This document shows, one piece after another, positions 49,027 through 64,000 of a stretch of DNA of 64,000 nt; position 1 is the first letter of the stretch, and each line of letters opens with the position of its first letter. Below the pieces are notes generated by a model that worked only from the letters and a program-made list of their open reading frames with translations, was not told where the DNA came from and made no database searches. The stretch is from Geosiphon pyriformis uo1 (lineage: Eukaryota > Fungi > Glomeromycota), in contig JAAOMT010000128.1 in the NCBI GenBank assembly GCA_016748015.1, forward strand, positions 1,929,538 to 1,993,537, in the 5' to 3' direction. The position numbers were made by a program, and so were the translations under genes.

Positions 49027-49929
49027 TCAATCATCCAAATTCTTCCACTTCCAAGCGAGTGCCCAGAATTCCAATATATATCTTACCATTGTCAGTAGGT
49101 CGTCATCTTTCACCCAAACTTTCCATTCCAGAGCGGTCAAGAAGTCAATTTCTATTGATCGAAGCTTACCTATGTCGATATCCAGTTGATCTGCGTACAG
49201 TTTCGTGAGATCTTTCATCTCAAAATCAATTTCCGTCTTGTAAGCTATTAGAAATGCGATGGCGAACAATGGAAAAATACTTGAAGCGGAAATAGTTGAG
49301 CCCGTTTTACCGTTATAAGTGAGAGCATATCGTCGAACCAGCACCAAACTTTTTATCGCGGTTCGTATTACGGCCCGTGGATAATCGGAATCGTAGTCTT
49401 GATAGAGTTCTAGCACGGTTAAAAATTCTTGTCTCAAGTGGGGTGAAAAAGTGATCTTGTAAGTATTTTGGCAAAACGCAGTCGTCATCAGAATGCAGAT
49501 GTCGGCCAAATTTTCATAGACATCATTTTCTGATGATGAATTAGAAATTAGGAGATTTTCAAACTTGTCGAGTAATTCGGTATCATCTGTATCATCGGCG
49601 CCCGTCGTCTGTAATGTATAATTTTAATAGTTGATATTGTAAAATAATTTAAAAGACCAAGCATTCTCATCAAGATTGTTAGTTACCTCGGCGATTTCCC
49701 AGTCCATCACCTCTCCATCCAGAAGTAAAGATTCTTGACTCGAACAAGAGGACGAATAGAAGCCATCAAGTTGTTTTGTAGAGTCATAGAATTTGCTTCC
49801 AGAGATAGAGTTTTGTGGAGTATTTACGTTTTTATTATGCGTCCAATATTTTAGGTTCGAATCACAATGTGAAGCTGTAGAGTTAGCTTGCACCGGAGCA
49901 AGCGAGTCTATAGCAGAAGCCACTGCCAT
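49027..49929 (-). CDS. Cyclin-box protein (Pho80/Pcl-like), 2 exons (49929-49687, 49608-49027), 274 aa
   Basis: A phase-0 GT-AG intron (49686-49609) joins the two ORFs. C-terminal FAIAFLIAYK...KLRSIEIDFLTALEWKVWV resembles cyclin helices 3-5 (A.K...L..ME..FL..L.W.L.V). Confidence 0.65.
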
Positions 49930-50530: not shown

Positions 50531-51310
50531 AAATAGATTAAAAGTATTCCAAATCGTAAAATTGAATATTGTCATCATTCTCGAACATTCTAAATCAGGT
50601 ACCCTCATATAGAAATAAAAAATTGGTTTCACTACATTCCCGAGTCGCATTTAATTGTTCATTTATTTTTTTATTGATTTGTGGTAGCACAAAATTCTTA
50701 ATATGAGATAATTGGAAAAATTAAAAGATTGAATAAATGCTTATTACAAATTTTAAATTTCAAAATATCAAAGTATAAAAAATCATACGTAACCTTTAAC
50801 CACCCCCAAAATTTCAAATGGAGTCACTGCTTCAAACCTAATTATAATATCGTGCTTTTGGCTTAAAAACTTAATTAGTTGAATTTATAGGCTGATGTGA
50901 GCATTTATCAAATTGATTATTACCTACTACTATGCCAAATGAGGTAATCATGTTCAAAACGTTGATCTTAAAGCTTTTCCTTAATGGTTTTATCAAATTA
51001 ATTCATAATTGTGGGAAAATGGTCGATCGATGAAATCATCAACTTTCCCGAGACAATATTACTGAACGAATGATAATCATACCATTATTAACAGCTGACT
51101 AGCTTTTTGATTTGTACTAGGTAACTCTAGGAAAAATTTTGTCTAATTGGAGAGAGCCTGACAATAATACTTTGAAAAATTTTCCTATTTAAAACACTAT
51201 CCAAAATTTTTAGTATCAATCACTTTATCACTTGTTCTTAAAATATTTCTCTCTCAAAGTCTAATACTTTTCATTAAATTCAAATTAAATCGTAAATATC
51301 ATTCCATAAA

Positions 51311-51691
51311 ATGCGAATAAAACTTTTAAACGTAAATTTTCCACAGACAGTTGATGGTCGAGTGTATCATGTTGGTGTCAAACCTGGTGAAGGTAAATTT
51401 TGTTTAACTTTGGCATTTTTTAATTAAAAATTCTTGATTATTTGATCTAATTTTGAATAGTGGCGAACCGTATAATAACTGTGGGTGATCCAGCTCGTGC
51501 GAAACTTTTGGCAAAATCATTAGACAATGATACCCCGTTATTCACTTACGAATCACAACGTGGTTTCTTGACCATAACCGGTCGGTATCGTGGAACGCCA
51601 ATTAGCATAATAGCTATTGGTATGGTAAGATTAATTTTTATTTATCTTCTGATTGGGATATCTTTCTTTCTTTCTTTCTTTTCTTTTTTTT

Positions 51692-51735
<44 letters not shown>

Positions 51736-52614
51736 TTCCCTTTCTTTTTTAATATTTTGAATGTAATTCTATTCAAAGGGGTTGGGAATGATGGACTTTT
51801 TCGTACGAGAAGTTCGTGCTGTAGTTGATGGTCCATTAGCAATAATTCGGTATGGCTCTTGTGGTTCCTTTGGTTCTTCCGCAGGCAATATCGTCATACC
51901 ACATGGTAATTTTGCAATTACGCGAAATTATGATTATTTCGCAGATGATAATGAGGACACCAATTCGAAACCGTATAATATATCAAAGGTTTTCAATGGG
52001 GATCCAGAAATTTATGCTTTGGTATGTGGCTCACTTTTGATATTTTCAATTTTTGGCCACCAATTAATAAAATTCTTATTTTCTCAATTCTCTTACTAAC
52101 AAAGCTAAAAGATGAATTCTCAAATTTTCTCGATTCTAAAACTGAAATTTTGACCGGACTAAATTCAACCAGTGACAGTTTCTACTCATCCCAAGGTCGT
52201 CAAGACATCAATTTTCGTGACGACAACCAAAACCTGATAGAGTACATTTCATCGGTATATCCAGAAACTCAATCCCTCGAAATGGAAACCTTCGCCCTTT
52301 ACCACCTCGCCAAGACTTCTACCAGCTCCCCAATAAAAGATTCCACAATTTCACAATCAAAGTTAAGCCCGGTGAGCACAAGTATTAAAGCTGGTGCGGC
52401 GTTGATGATTTTTATAGATAGAAAGAATGAGAAATTTATTTCACCAGAAAGGATAAATTTCTTGGAAAATGTGGCTGGAAAAGCGATACTAAATGCCTTG
52501 GTGAGGGTGAAATTGGATCAAGTTCATGACGCGGTGGGTAGTGTTTGGGAACAGAAAGTGACAGAAATTGATAGTGGTATAAGTGATGAAGGGGAGAATT
52601 CAAGTTTCATTTGA
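51311..52614 (+). CDS. Uridine/purine nucleoside phosphorylase family protein (PNP_UDP_1), 4 exons (51311-51392, 51461-51624, 51779-52021, 52105-52614), 332 aa
   Basis: GT-AG introns give a 999-nt frame, with a TACTAAC branch point in intron 3. Motifs GRVYHVGVKPGEVANRIITVGDPARA, IGMG..MDFFVRE, IRYGSCG, SDSFYSSQGR, EMETF. Confidence 0.9.
51660..51732. repeat. (TTTC)n microsatellite in intron 2 of the phosphorylase gene
   Basis: Direct inspection. Confidence 0.9.
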
Positions 52615-53002: not shown

Positions 53003-56000
53003 TCAGAAATCTTTTATGCTATATAACTCTGCGAAAAGGCTCATTGTAAGCTGTTCGACCTTTGATTTGAATGTCAATTTTTACACAATTTAGAAAATGA
53101 AGGTATTCGAACAGTGAATGAGAGAAAAAAAGAATGAAAGAATTATTTTACCGCGGTTACTGTATTCGAATTTTTAACAGGAATTTCTTCCTCGTTGCCA
53201 ATGAGTATAAAAAATCTTTTAGTGAATATATAATCGCCAACTGAAATTTTCAGTAAAGTCCAAAAAAGGCTTGTTGCTTCATCAGAAATATTTCGCTAAA
53301 AATGTTCATTGTGTAAAATTAATTAAAAATTTCAAAGAGTCAAACTGAAAAAAAAATTCGATTGTAAACTTGCATCAAAGATTTCTTTCTGATCCAAAAT
53401 TGTGACAGATTGACTAAAAGCCGCAGAGCGAATGTGGATTAAAGCGTAATGTGCTCTGTAAATAAAAGTAACCATTTTTCGTAAGATTTTCATTGTTAAA
53501 TTCAAACAAAGTTTGTCTGCTTAGAATAACTGTCAAAATTTTGTTTTACTTTTCTATTTCAGCGGGATCCGTTGACCCCTCCAAACACTCAATTATGTCT
53601 GGGTGTAGAATGACAAACCAATCATCATTGGTACATTTGGAGCGTCGCTTGTTTAGAATTTGGAAAGCAAAGTAATGTTTAATTCACGAAAGATAATCAC
53701 AAGAAAATCGGAAAAAGTTCGAGATTTTTTACACTATTTAAAATGCCAAAAACTCTTTGGAGGGTGTCATTATAGGTTAAAAAAACTCGTCTGCTTATGG
53801 CAATAATTCCTCCTAGTAAATAAGTGTAGAAATATGAAATTCAACCTTCTTATTCAATTAAGGGATGATTAACTAGGTTTTACCTGAGGGAAATATTGTG
53901 AGACATCTTGTTGAACTCGATAGAGAAGATTCCCATCGAATGACTTGAAATTCGCAGCTTGACTGATGCTTAAGTTGATCCAAAAAGGGCATTTGGAATA
54001 GACTCTTGAGGTTGGGGCAATCAATCTAAGTAATCAAAAATTTAGACATTTGAACCTAGAACATTGCTTCAAATAATCGATTTTTAAGCCTACCAACACA
54101 AACTGAATGTCAATTGTTTTTTTCATTGAATAAACAAATCTTGCCCCAAGAGATCTTAATACGAAAATAAGATTGGCTATTTCAGGATTTTGTAGATTAC
54201 CAAAAATCCAAAATCTTGGCCCTTTGAAACGAGGGGTCCTCAGGCTAGGTGATAATTCAACATTGAGAGGCGCGATGATAATACGATGTTTAGTTTTATC
54301 TCCGAAATTAAATATTTTACGTGCTTCCTGACCGAGAGGAAACATGAATAAATGTAATGATGGCATAAAATTTAGCCTTAGGGAGCCAACCTTTGGAGAA
54401 AGTGAAAAAGATTAATTTGAAAACAATATATATAATATGAAAGAAAGTTTTACCAAAGAATTGATTGAAATTTTTTACGAGTTTATTTTCTAAATAGTCG
54501 AAAAATAGATCGTCCAAGTTATTTAGGCCTTGAAAATCGTTTCTATCTGTCTGAATGCTAAAGACCGCCAAGTGAGCAGCGGAATCCCCGATAAACCGTT
54601 TTGCTTGATGAAATTCGATAGGCTTCGCTAGCCACAGTATAGTTTCTTTCTGAAATATCTTTCTAAAATGTTTATTATCGAAAATAAATGAAAGGTTTCG
54701 AAGGATTGAAACATATAAAAATTTTCCTTACAAATATGGAATTCCCTCTGACCCACAAATTCGTTTGATGGCCACGTTAGCAAATAAACGTCTTGTTTGC
54801 CGGTCGACGATTACTCCCTCCCAATCCCTGCGAGTTATTCCTCATAAAATTTGAAGTTTGAAAATGAAAATAAATTGGCAAAAATATTTACATAGTATTG
54901 CTTTTTATCCACCACCGTTCTGTAAAAGAATTAAAAATTTACGTTACTTGAATAAAAAAATTCCGAATCTCTATTTAATTCCAGAGGAAGAAATGCTTAC
55001 CAATATTTTGGCAATTTCTCTTATTATTTGTATTCGGGTCCTTACGTTCCTCATTATTTTCCTCTGAAGCCGTATCATTCTTGTCAAAAAATATTTAAAA
55101 AATTAATGAAAGCTTTTCCCTTGGTTGGCCGAATGAAAGCCTCATCATCACTCAAAAATATTTGCATTTGAGAAAGTGTAGATCTATAATTACTTCCTGT
55201 GAAATGAAAATCTTTTTAGCCAAAGAGGTTGGTTTTTCACTTCCATGTTTCTTCTCTTTTTCATTATTTGAATCTTTTTTACTCTTGATTTGATTTTTGG
55301 TTTGTAAAAAATTTTGACGAGAGATTGGTCTGCTATTTTCTGAAACATTATTGACTTTAGGTGAGGACAATGGGATTGAGGAAGAGGCATCATTTTTTTG
55401 GACTAATCTTTCTCCAGTTTTTAATGGGGAATAGCCGCTTGTTTCTGATAATTCTCCTTGGCTAGGTGCCAAGTTTTTGTTAAACTGTATAGACACAAAA
55501 TTAAAATATTTTCCTTCAAATTTTTTTAAACTTGAATATTGTAGATCGAGAAAGGGGTTACTTGATCTTTAGCCAAATCGTCTTCCCTTTGCTTTCCCTT
55601 CTGTTTGCGCCTATAACTTTGCATTAAATGTTCATAATTCCTCAAATTTTTTAGATTGACCCATTGTGATTGATTTGATGAATCTAAGAAACATTAAAAC
55701 TCTAGTTAAATAACCAATTTTTGGTTCATTAATCATTCTAAAATGGTCTCACCATTAAATAAAACTCTGACAAAATTCTCCCCCTCAATATCTCTCATCT
55801 CTATAATTTCTTTTACCAATTTTATACTGTCTCTTCTTTTGGATAATCTCCTGGATTTTATGCCTCCGGGTCGAATGATAGTTCCTGGTTTTCTGATTCT
55901 TCAAGTTCGCCATGAGAGCAATAAATAATTACAATCAAGAATTTAAGAGAAATCAATTATTATTATTATTATATATAAATTAAAATTCTTACTTCGTAGG

Positions 56001-56048
56001 AACTTTACCACCCATACTCTTACGCGCAAAGCCAGTACGAGGGTTCAT
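53003..56048 (-). CDS. Chp1/TASOR-like protein: H3-tail mimic, chromodomain, SPOC, PIN-like C-terminus; 15 exons, about 628 aa
   Basis: Exons 56048-55993, 55892(or 55898)-55753, 55683-55562, 55484-55194, 55079-55001, 54919-54892, 54827-54732, 54662-54479, 54390-54094, 54025-53884, 53812-53733, 53647-53550, 53455-53374, 53295-53161, 53059-53003 splice to 1887 nt with all phases consistent (13 GT-AG introns, one GC-AG). Chromodomain: VKEIIEMRDIEGENFVRVLFND...QWVNLKNLRNYEHLMQSY. SPOC-like: DWEGVIV...FFDYLENKLVGSL...LFMFP. TASOR/Chp1-like: MPFLDQLKH...IFPSGGIIAIS...WFVILHP...KRFFILI. Confidence 0.75.
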
Positions 56049-57734: not shown

Positions 57735-58151
57735 ATGAACTCAATTCAATTTATTGTCATGATCTTTATCTCAATTTTTTCTCTTTTAATAATGTTTAGT
57801 GTCAGCACACCAATTACTGGTTTAACCCCATCAAAAATACTTTCAACTAATGCTAATGAAAAAGATAATAATCTTAATATTGCAAATACTGCAAACCAAG
57901 CATTATCTATGAACAATTTTAACCAACTTGAAGACACCGAGAATGGGGCATCCGAGAAAACTTTTTTGAATAGTCAAGGCGGAACTGGAGGGATCGGATT
58001 GACTGGTACCACATTATCTCAAGAATCTTCGGATATTAGCAAAGCTTTACAAGCATTGAATAGTAATAAACTTGATTTTAGCAATAATCAAGTAAATACC
58101 ATTGAATCTTCAGATCACGGTGCCAATCAAAATACTTTATTTGTTGGTTAA
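57735..58151 (+). CDS. Small secreted-type protein, 138 aa, N/S/T-rich, cysteine-free
   Basis: Hydrophobic N-terminus MNSIQFIVMIFISIFSLLIMFSVS-TPI resembles a signal peptide. Intact single-exon ORF in AT-rich flanks. Confidence 0.7.
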   Translation: MNSIQFIVMIFISIFSLLIMFSVSTPITGLTPSKILSTNANEKDNNLNIANTANQALSMNNFNQLEDTENGASEKTFLNSQGGTGGIGLTGTTLSQESSDISKALQALNSNKLDFSNNQVNTIESSDHGANQNTLFVG

Positions 58152-61979: not shown

Positions 61980-64000
61980 TTTTTTTTTTTTTTATTAAGC
62001 ATTTAACAAGTGTAGCCCAACCACTACCTAAACTATAACAATATACAAAATCCTATATTAAGTATGATTCATGCACTTTCTATATATGACAGCCACTTGA
62101 GCCAATCAAGGCAACACTAGACATCTAGACCACTAATTACTAAGAAGTTACTTAAAAAACTGAAGTGTGCACTGAGTAGACAAGAATGTAAACCATAACA
62201 TATGTGAATACCTAACCTGATACCAAAATCAAAGATCACACTGGGAGACCACAAGAAAGCCGGACCAGATACCACCAATATTATGAATTCATTATATAAC
62301 AAAAGACCATGTTTCTTATAAAGCACTCTCAATTTGGTAGTTGGCAGCCACATGGTGAATCTATGACCCTCAGCAAAGCTTCAGACTAAACCAATTACTA
62401 GAAACTTATTATTAGAGCCACCATCCAGCAGACAGACCATATTATTTATCCAATTCTTCAAAACAAAGCCCTTGGCTAAGGACATATATAAATAATCCAA
62501 CAACTCAGCCTCTTATAGAAATCAAATCACCATACTATCAGCAGCAAGAACACCAAGCAACTTAATCCAACAATCAATAGTTTTTGAAATCAACTCATTT
62601 TTAGCACCAGCATTATGAATGCAAGAGAACATGTGATTAGAATTCTCAAACAACCCACACTGGATACATAGCATGCTCAGATAATCTGAATCATAAAGCC
62701 TCTTCCTCTTGGCTACAAGAAGGCAATTGTGCATGACTTTCATGAAATAGAATTGAAGACACACAGAAGAGTAGCTGGTAAAGCCTGATTGAAACTGACT
62801 ATTAGGATGTCATACACTAAATATATATTGCATATTAATTTCATTGTGTAGTGTACTTTCTACAGCATAAACCACACATTTGGCTTCCCAACCAACAAAG
62901 CTTACAGCATCAAAAAGACACTTGACAAAATAGTAAGCATTTTCAGAAACAGGTTTTTCTTTAATAAACAAAAACCAGCAGGACATTTCAACAAATAACA
63001 CAATGTCAGAACCAGTGGCAACATTGGCCAATAAATCAATATACTCATTGTTATAAACCCAGAGTGGCCCTTAACTTTGTTCCAAGCTACTAACAAGTTC
63101 TTTAATGCAATGATCTGCTGGATTTATTCCCTTTCAATCCAATATTTATCACAAAAATTGAGACCAGTAAAATTTTTATAAAAAATACAAGCATCCAAAA
63201 ATGCCTAACTGTCTATAAAAAGAGTAACCAAACTGAAAACAAAAATGCACTTTAAAGCAAAGGTGATAGCATATAGTTCAGTCAGGGTTGACGAAAGCAA
63301 ATCATTCATTCCAATTCCCATACCATCATCAATATTAGGAAAATAAGCAGCAGTACCACTGTAAGCACCTATAGAACCCAAATTTTTAACTGAGCCATTA
63401 GTATAAACCACCACACTATCTGAAGTATTCTCAAAAAATATTTACTGATAGAACTTAGATTAATTCAGGAACTATCAAGAGCTGGATCAGAAGCTAAGAC
63501 ACAACCATCAACTAAACCACCATTCCCAATAAATATCATTAACACACTAAACTAACCAGGAACCAGACCTTTCAAATTCAGTCTTTTCCATCTACAAAAA
63601 TTACTTCACATAAAACACATGCTGTAACAGTCCAAAAGCTGGTTTGTAAAAATAATGCCAAACTTCTTTAGCAAATTAACCACACTTATATACTGATCCA
63701 AACCCAAAATGTCAGCAACAGATATGCCACTACCAGTCCAGAAAACATTCAGCAAAACATTGCCCAAGAAGAACTTGCATGACACCAAAATGTTGGTTAT
63801 ACCAGCTAAAAATGAGTTTACAGAATCCAATAACAACACAACCAGAAAACTAATAGGTTGTTGAAACATTCAATTGACTGCCTGCAGATCCATCATCCTG
63901 TGTTTAAAAAATCTGCCAAGAACGTCTTTTGAATTGGCAAACAGTACCAAATTAGCCAAAAAGTTTTTGGCTTGCAATTGCCTAAAAGTCTTGAGGTTAT
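61980..64000 (-). mobile_element. LINE copy 5, 3' part (RNase H, CCHC, 3'UTR, poly(A)); same subfamily as copy 4; continues beyond the window
   Basis: Poly(T) at 61980-61993. Minus-strand ORFs closely match copy 4 (WLPTTKLRVLYKKH vs WLPTAKLKVLYKKH; VVYTNGSVKNLG vs VVYTNDLVKSLG). Confidence 0.95.
62009..62118 (-). other. LINE 3'UTR structured RNA element (copy 5)
   Basis: The minus strand reads agtgttgccttgattggctcaagtggctgtca...ttaggtagtggttgggctacact, with the same stems as copy 4. Confidence 0.7.

Follow-up and report, generated by a model that had tools for sequence, protein, structure and literature searches.

Copies of the histone H3 tail outside histones are known from several chromatin proteins, and the H3K9-like mimics in G9a, ATF7IP and SETDB1 are functional (10.1101/2025.10.22.683908). 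In Swi6, the HP1 protein of S. pombe, the ARK loop brings an H3-like sequence and a chromodomain together in one polypeptide (PMC9128075). On the reader side, human HP1-class chromodomains follow the ligand consensus (Q/N)(T/V)A(R/I/F/W/V)K(S/T), with -3 restricted to Thr or Val and -4 to a medium polar residue, the Cbx7/Polycomb class follows A(R/I/L/F/Y/V)K(S/T), and the trimethylated SETDB1 sequence RGFALKS is bound by Cbx7 at 5 uM (PMC3013012). On the writer side, DIM-5 requires R8-G12 and has its activity greatly lowered by T11A (PMC3248561), and SUV39H1 tolerates small residues alone at +2 and T, S, A or Y at -3 (PMC8303541). As for chromodomain scaffolds, Chp1 and Tas3 were reported absent in related Mucor species (PMC12863538), and a literature search, thin on subscription journals, found no mimic in Chp1, TASOR or a fungal chromodomain scaffold. 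Here we describe an H3-tail-like segment at the extreme N-terminus of a protein of Geosiphon pyriformis with a predicted chromodomain fold.

Gene structure and surrounding DNA

The window analysed is a stretch of 64,000 nucleotides of Geosiphon pyriformis DNA, and the host gene, G9A89_020077, lies on its minus strand and encodes KAG9304513.1, a hypothetical protein of 567 aa in a cluster of one. The first exon, as originally predicted, holds 18 full codons and ends two bases into a Lys codon; the donor at 55992 reads GTAAGA (Table 1). The proposed junction between exons 1 and 2 is also that of the NCBI model, which makes the same join from the ATG at 56048 and represents a second prediction, not transcript evidence.

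Table 1. Features of G9A89_020077 (window coordinates) and H3-tail copies in microbial loci (locus coordinates)
Feature	Location	Strand	Basis or remark
Exon 1: start ATG and H3-tail-like segment	55993..56048	-	ORF reading; same exon in NCBI model
12-codon motif; final Lys codon split by intron	55992..56027	-	Motif scan
Intron 1, GT-AG, 94 nt, or 100 nt if the alternative acceptor at 55893, also in frame, is used	55899..55992	-	Splice-site and GC reading
Rival donor-like GTAAGAG within motif; with acceptor 55885 gives in-frame product lacking the motif after Ala-Arg	56016..56023	-	
Exon 2: basic linker and chromodomain strands 1-2, residues 20-67	55753..55898	-	
Exon 3: chromodomain third strand and helix	55562..55683	-	NCBI model runs on to 55532
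Exons of polar, charged linker, about residues 119-242 of NCBI model	55001..55484	-	
3' exons: candidate SPOC / domain II / PIN region	53143..54840	-	Exon structure uncertain
H3-tail copy N-terminal to chromatin-binding MBD domain	L119:417-872	+	
H3-tail copy after ankyrin repeats	L036:4164-7364	-	
H3-tail copy in the middle of a 909-codon ORF	L018:1574-4300	-	No Pfam match; same protein in L121
H3-tail copy in unannotated ORF	L093:238-1323	-	
H3-tail copy in unannotated ORF	L009:5908-7425	-	

The frame of exon 2 is closed just upstream and offers no start codon ahead of residue 53, which already lies in the chromodomain, so the gene requires a further exon on the 5' side; an upstream in-frame start within intron 1 was rejected. 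Either length of intron 1 fits the gene's other introns, and from the splice-site and frame readings the motif is very probably translated. The motif could be mostly missing from the protein if the donor at 56023 were used with the acceptor at 55885, or if the transcript started elsewhere, and the GTAAGA at 56023 is as good a consensus as that at 55992, with the frame staying open after the join. We nevertheless regard this outcome as highly unlikely, given that GC content is exon-like (0.42) up to 55993 and then drops to 0.11 past the donor, that the resulting intron of 139 nt fits the gene's introns worse than one of 94-100 nt and would skip two nearer AGs, that the NCBI model uses 55992, and that a 9/12 match to H3 within an intron would lack an explanation.

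The NCBI product is probably wrong in its 3' half, where the frame of exon 54025-53884 is probably incorrect and the exon starting at 53812 is skipped. An alternative GT-AG chain with introns of 68 and 71 nt reads 54025-53884 in the other frame, includes the exon from 53812 and remains open (window 54103-53733, minus strand); this reading may resemble domain II of Chp1-like proteins. Queries in the sequence searches below were single exons and the NCBI protein KAG9304513.1 with this doubtful half.

Several further observations were made in the window. The 3' end of intron 1 is GC-richer than the rest of the intron, and an ATG there starts an ORF of 42 codons that runs across exon 2 out of frame (55913-55788, minus strand). 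About 280 bases upstream of the gene's ATG, at 57150-56330 (minus strand), stand broken coding-like pieces with a HIT-type HFHLHIV motif and in-frame TGA codons where Trp would fit; this segment has no NCBI gene call, its single pieces have no Pfam match, and it may be what is left of DNA from an endobacterium related to Mollicutes. A single-exon ORF of 138 codons with a signal-peptide-like hydrophobic N-terminus (57735-58151, plus strand) is divergent from the chromodomain gene, and NCBI gives a product of 119 aa for it. A neighbouring nucleoside phosphorylase gene lies near an ORF that looks cyclin-like by eye (window 51300-52614 and 49027-49929). The regions of about 15400-48000 and 62000-64000 hold several decayed copies of related LINE-like elements, with very AT-rich spacers between them.

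The H3-tail-like segment

Residues 8-19 of the protein equal H3 residues 7-18 at 9 of 12 positions, and K10, S11, K15 and K19 take the places of K9, S10, K14 and K18. The likeness, re-derived here from the sequence as the original prediction had it, lies far beyond chance: ARKS occurs once in the six frames of the window, and with 1.9e-5 matches of 9/12 or better to H3 7-18 expected in the window, a chance motif was rejected. Residues 1-19 likewise outscored all 2000 shuffles against a profile built from 16 H3 proteins of the fetched loci. The ARKS-like core in this non-histone protein is real.

The likeness ends with the motif. By the same profile, residues 20-45 were equalled by 276 of 2000 shuffles and residues 20-60 by 82 of 2000, so that KPGTI and PGGIK, which had been taken as faint echoes of H3, are not significant. 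No histone fold was found in residues 20-140, for which 285 of 2000 shuffles scored as high and which hold the chromodomain fold instead, in keeping with the earlier statement that none follows the tail; an H3 variant or pseudogene was rejected on this lack of a histone-fold signal.

The start Met stands 7 residues ahead of the Ala of ARKS, a spacing shared by 41 of the 44 H3-like matches among the matches listed from a metagenome scan. Residues 2-7, in fixed register, are identical to the H3 consensus at 0 of 6 positions, and there is neither an ARTKQT start nor a K4. Because the distance from the start Met matches H3 while the six residues between share nothing with its consensus, the sequence suggests that the motif descends from the beginning of an H3 gene, of which the K9-K18 side survived and the K4 side did not.

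Chromodomain and C-terminal half

Residues 1-110, modelled from the single sequence, show a chromodomain of three strands and a C-terminal helix at 44-100 (pLDDT 80-87 over 51-100) and no structure over 1-46. Foldseek ranked chromodomains throughout, namely those of MPP8, CBX7, Rhino and HP1 (best E 0.01, prob 1.00), VIA gave Z 8.8 for Rhino (rmsd 2.4, 63 aligned) and Z 7.0 for Chp1, and the Atlas agrees with the assignment. The chromodomain placed about 25 residues past the motif is therefore upheld by the fold model and the structure searches. A PWWP domain, matched weakly and below the cut-off (E 0.016), was rejected in favour of the chromodomain fold, and sequence searches of the PDB were blank or gave chance-level matches.

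The cage residues of Drosophila HP1, Y24, W45 and Y48, fall on K45, F66 and S69 or D68 in the register of the VIA aligned range (model 43-95, chain 22-74), and the protein sequence has no aromatic residues at 43-46 and 67-74. By this modelled register, the chromodomain has lost two of the three cage aromatics and probably does not read methyl-lysine. With the cage lost, methyl-dependent self-binding or auto-inhibition appears unlikely, and the earlier suggestion of auto-inhibition is weakened to that extent.

The original prediction had assigned a chromodomain-SPOC-PIN architecture, of which the chromodomain is borne out by its fold and the remainder is not confirmed. SPOC had no Pfam or PDB sequence match, the model of its region reached pLDDT 34 and the fold search with it was uninformative; domain II and PIN had no Pfam match on single exons, and the C-terminal half may bear a motif likeness to them. 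In the Atlas feature search, the nearest entries were three clusters of Chromo proteins of 1060-1380 aa, two of them fungal, at 0.85-0.86. The Chp1/TASOR label, which rests on this likeness, may serve as a lead.

Orthologues and other H3-tail copies

No orthologue was found by HMMER, in which the longest exon (54390-54094, minus strand) retrieved KAG9304513.1 alone from 1.84 billion representatives; word searches with the whole protein and with residues 1-100 found only the protein itself, and the metagenome scan gave none. A route through the neighbouring gene reached Mortierellaceae and Dichotomocladium alone, with no similar gene beside that neighbour. In Dichotomocladium elegans (L004:10001-18078), nucleoside phosphorylase stands near a Cyclin gene and no relative of the chromodomain gene stands beside it. 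This failure reflects fast divergence and the limits of the searches rather than absence.

The metagenome scan used the pattern ARKS[M/I/L/V]GGKxP and returned at least 79 ARKS matches, at least 44 of them H3-like among the matches listed; one locus labelled as a human gut assembly (L014) was left out of every analysis. Among the 44 H3-like matches listed (L005-L124), as found with ARKS[M/I/L/V], many are divergent H3 genes in which Thr11 is replaced, by Val in 25, by Ile in 13 and by Met in 5. This position, varied in divergent H3 genes, is one that DIM-5 reads.

H3-tail copies recur in microbial non-histone sequences. The proteins of L119, L036, L018/L121, L093 and L009 (Table 1), like G9A89_020077, carry ARKSxGGKxP without a histone fold. 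Their hosts are unrelated, and several are nearer to H3 than the Geosiphon motif; tblastn found no likeness of these loci to G9A89_020077 beyond the motif.

Discussion

Like G9a/GLP, ATF7IP and SETDB1, the protein is a chromatin protein other than a histone that bears a short motif of the ARKS type, and the Phe at -3 recalls SETDB1 K1170 (RGFALKS). It differs from them in a longer likeness that extends through K14 and K18, in its place at the extreme N-terminus in H3 register, in having no SET domain, and in being a candidate mimic. The ARK loop of Swi6 sits within a working chromodomain, whereas here the motif stands apart as a tail and the chromodomain has a degenerate cage. The protein resembles histone H3 and its divergent variants over residues 7-18 and in how far these lie from the start Met, but lacks the ARTK/K4 start and the histone fold. 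Like Chp1 of RITS and TASOR of HUSH, it presents an N-terminal chromodomain fold, a long polar linker and a folded-looking C-terminal half, although their SPOC, domain II and PIN were not detected; moreover, Chp1 uses its cage to bind H3K9me, as the loss of binding in W44A shows, and two of the cage aromatics are missing here.

We tentatively favour the reading that H3-tail enzymes, and a reader other than HP1, act in trans on the tail of a scaffold that would have lost its own methyl reading, a view that we put somewhat short of an even chance. The protein would serve in the nucleus as a chromodomain scaffold, perhaps a rapidly evolving representative of the large fungal Chp1-like family, and its N-terminus would be a translated, flexible copy of H3 7-18 working in trans, of which the K9-K18 part would be what remains because residues 2-7 share 0/6 and residues 8-19 share 9/12 with H3. 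The tail would be modified by enzymes of the H3 tail, such as a K9 methyltransferase, an S10 kinase, or a K14 acetyltransferase or ubiquitin ligase, and once modified could be bound by the reader of another protein, for which a hydrophobic-clasp chromodomain is a likelier candidate than one of the HP1 class. It might thus link the protein to silencing complexes despite a chromodomain that could not itself hold methyl-lysine. For this reading we infer the translation of exon 1, the modification, the partner and the silencing role. An S10-type phospho-switch is possible, the S10 equivalent being kept.

The choice of reader and writer bears on a narrower version, close to the original prediction, in which a Clr4/DIM-5 enzyme methylates K10, and this residue then either attracts HP1 itself or is bound in the cage of the same protein. 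Read as G-F-A-R-K-S, the motif fails the HP1-class consensus by Phe at -3 and Gly at -4, which weakens HP1 recruitment, although this consensus is human and may not hold in the fungus, where HP1 specificity may differ. It does match the Cbx7/Polycomb-class consensus, a loose one that any ARKS would match, and by its sequence appears a better fit to the Cbx7/SETDB1 'FALKS' type than to the HP1 class. The Met at +2, the Thr11 position, and the Phe at -3 are likewise off the published DIM-5/SUV39 preferences, which come from other species; this argues for a poor DIM-5/SUV39 substrate and weakens the proposed methylation of the Clr4/DIM-5 type. With its own cage lost as well, the narrow version seems extremely improbable even with ARKS and the G12-G13-K14 equivalents intact, and recruitment of HP1 by Clr4/DIM-5 methylation would be the least supported version of the proposal.

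The substitutions at -3 and +2, positions read by writers and HP1, would also suit a relic, in which the first codons of H3 were captured and kept as a basic disordered leader, for nuclear import or nucleic-acid binding, with no mimic function. The exact H3 register from the start Met and the composition of residues 1-42, with 14 Lys/Arg and one acidic residue, point the same way, and Met, Val or Ile at position 11 is common in divergent H3 genes among the matches listed. The decay of such a relic would be uneven, however, at 0/6 before the motif against 9/12 inside it, a boundary chosen after the fact, and H3 likeness is nil past residue 19, so that we consider a relic somewhat unlikely. A chromodomain without its cage no longer reads methyl-lysine but may still pair with a strand in its groove. 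With the motif so near the chromodomain, the unmodified tail might lie in that groove, in the same molecule or in an adjacent copy, and so shut the groove or join copies into oligomers; the Swi6 ARK loop provides a precedent (PMC9128075). Self-binding of this kind appears distinctly unlikely, as basic residues outnumber acidic ones in the chromodomain (12 Lys/Arg, 7 Asp/Glu), unlike in the acidic HP1-class domains, and the tail is not docked in the single-sequence model, which is weak evidence.

Beyond the tail as a site acted on in trans, one could imagine a Chp1-like silencing scaffold of Glomeromycotina with its roles swapped, in which the chromodomain would no longer read H3K9me and the H3 K9-K18 tail that the scaffold itself carries, acquired from a histone gene, would be marked and read like a nucleosome, and the two competing donors could give forms with and without the tail; this fuller picture is speculative and, on present evidence, unlikely.

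Histone mimicry is already known, and the motif of G9A89_020077 is, as judged from its sequence, a single candidate from a single species, while motifs of this kind turn up repeatedly in microbial proteins unrelated to it. In practice, antibodies against H3K9 or H3S10 might also recognise the protein. If functional, the motif would add what is probably a RITS/HUSH-type scaffold to the known cases of H3K9 mimicry, turning a reader into a substrate, and would provide a handle on the link between RNA silencing and heterochromatin in the transposon-rich genomes of Glomeromycotina.
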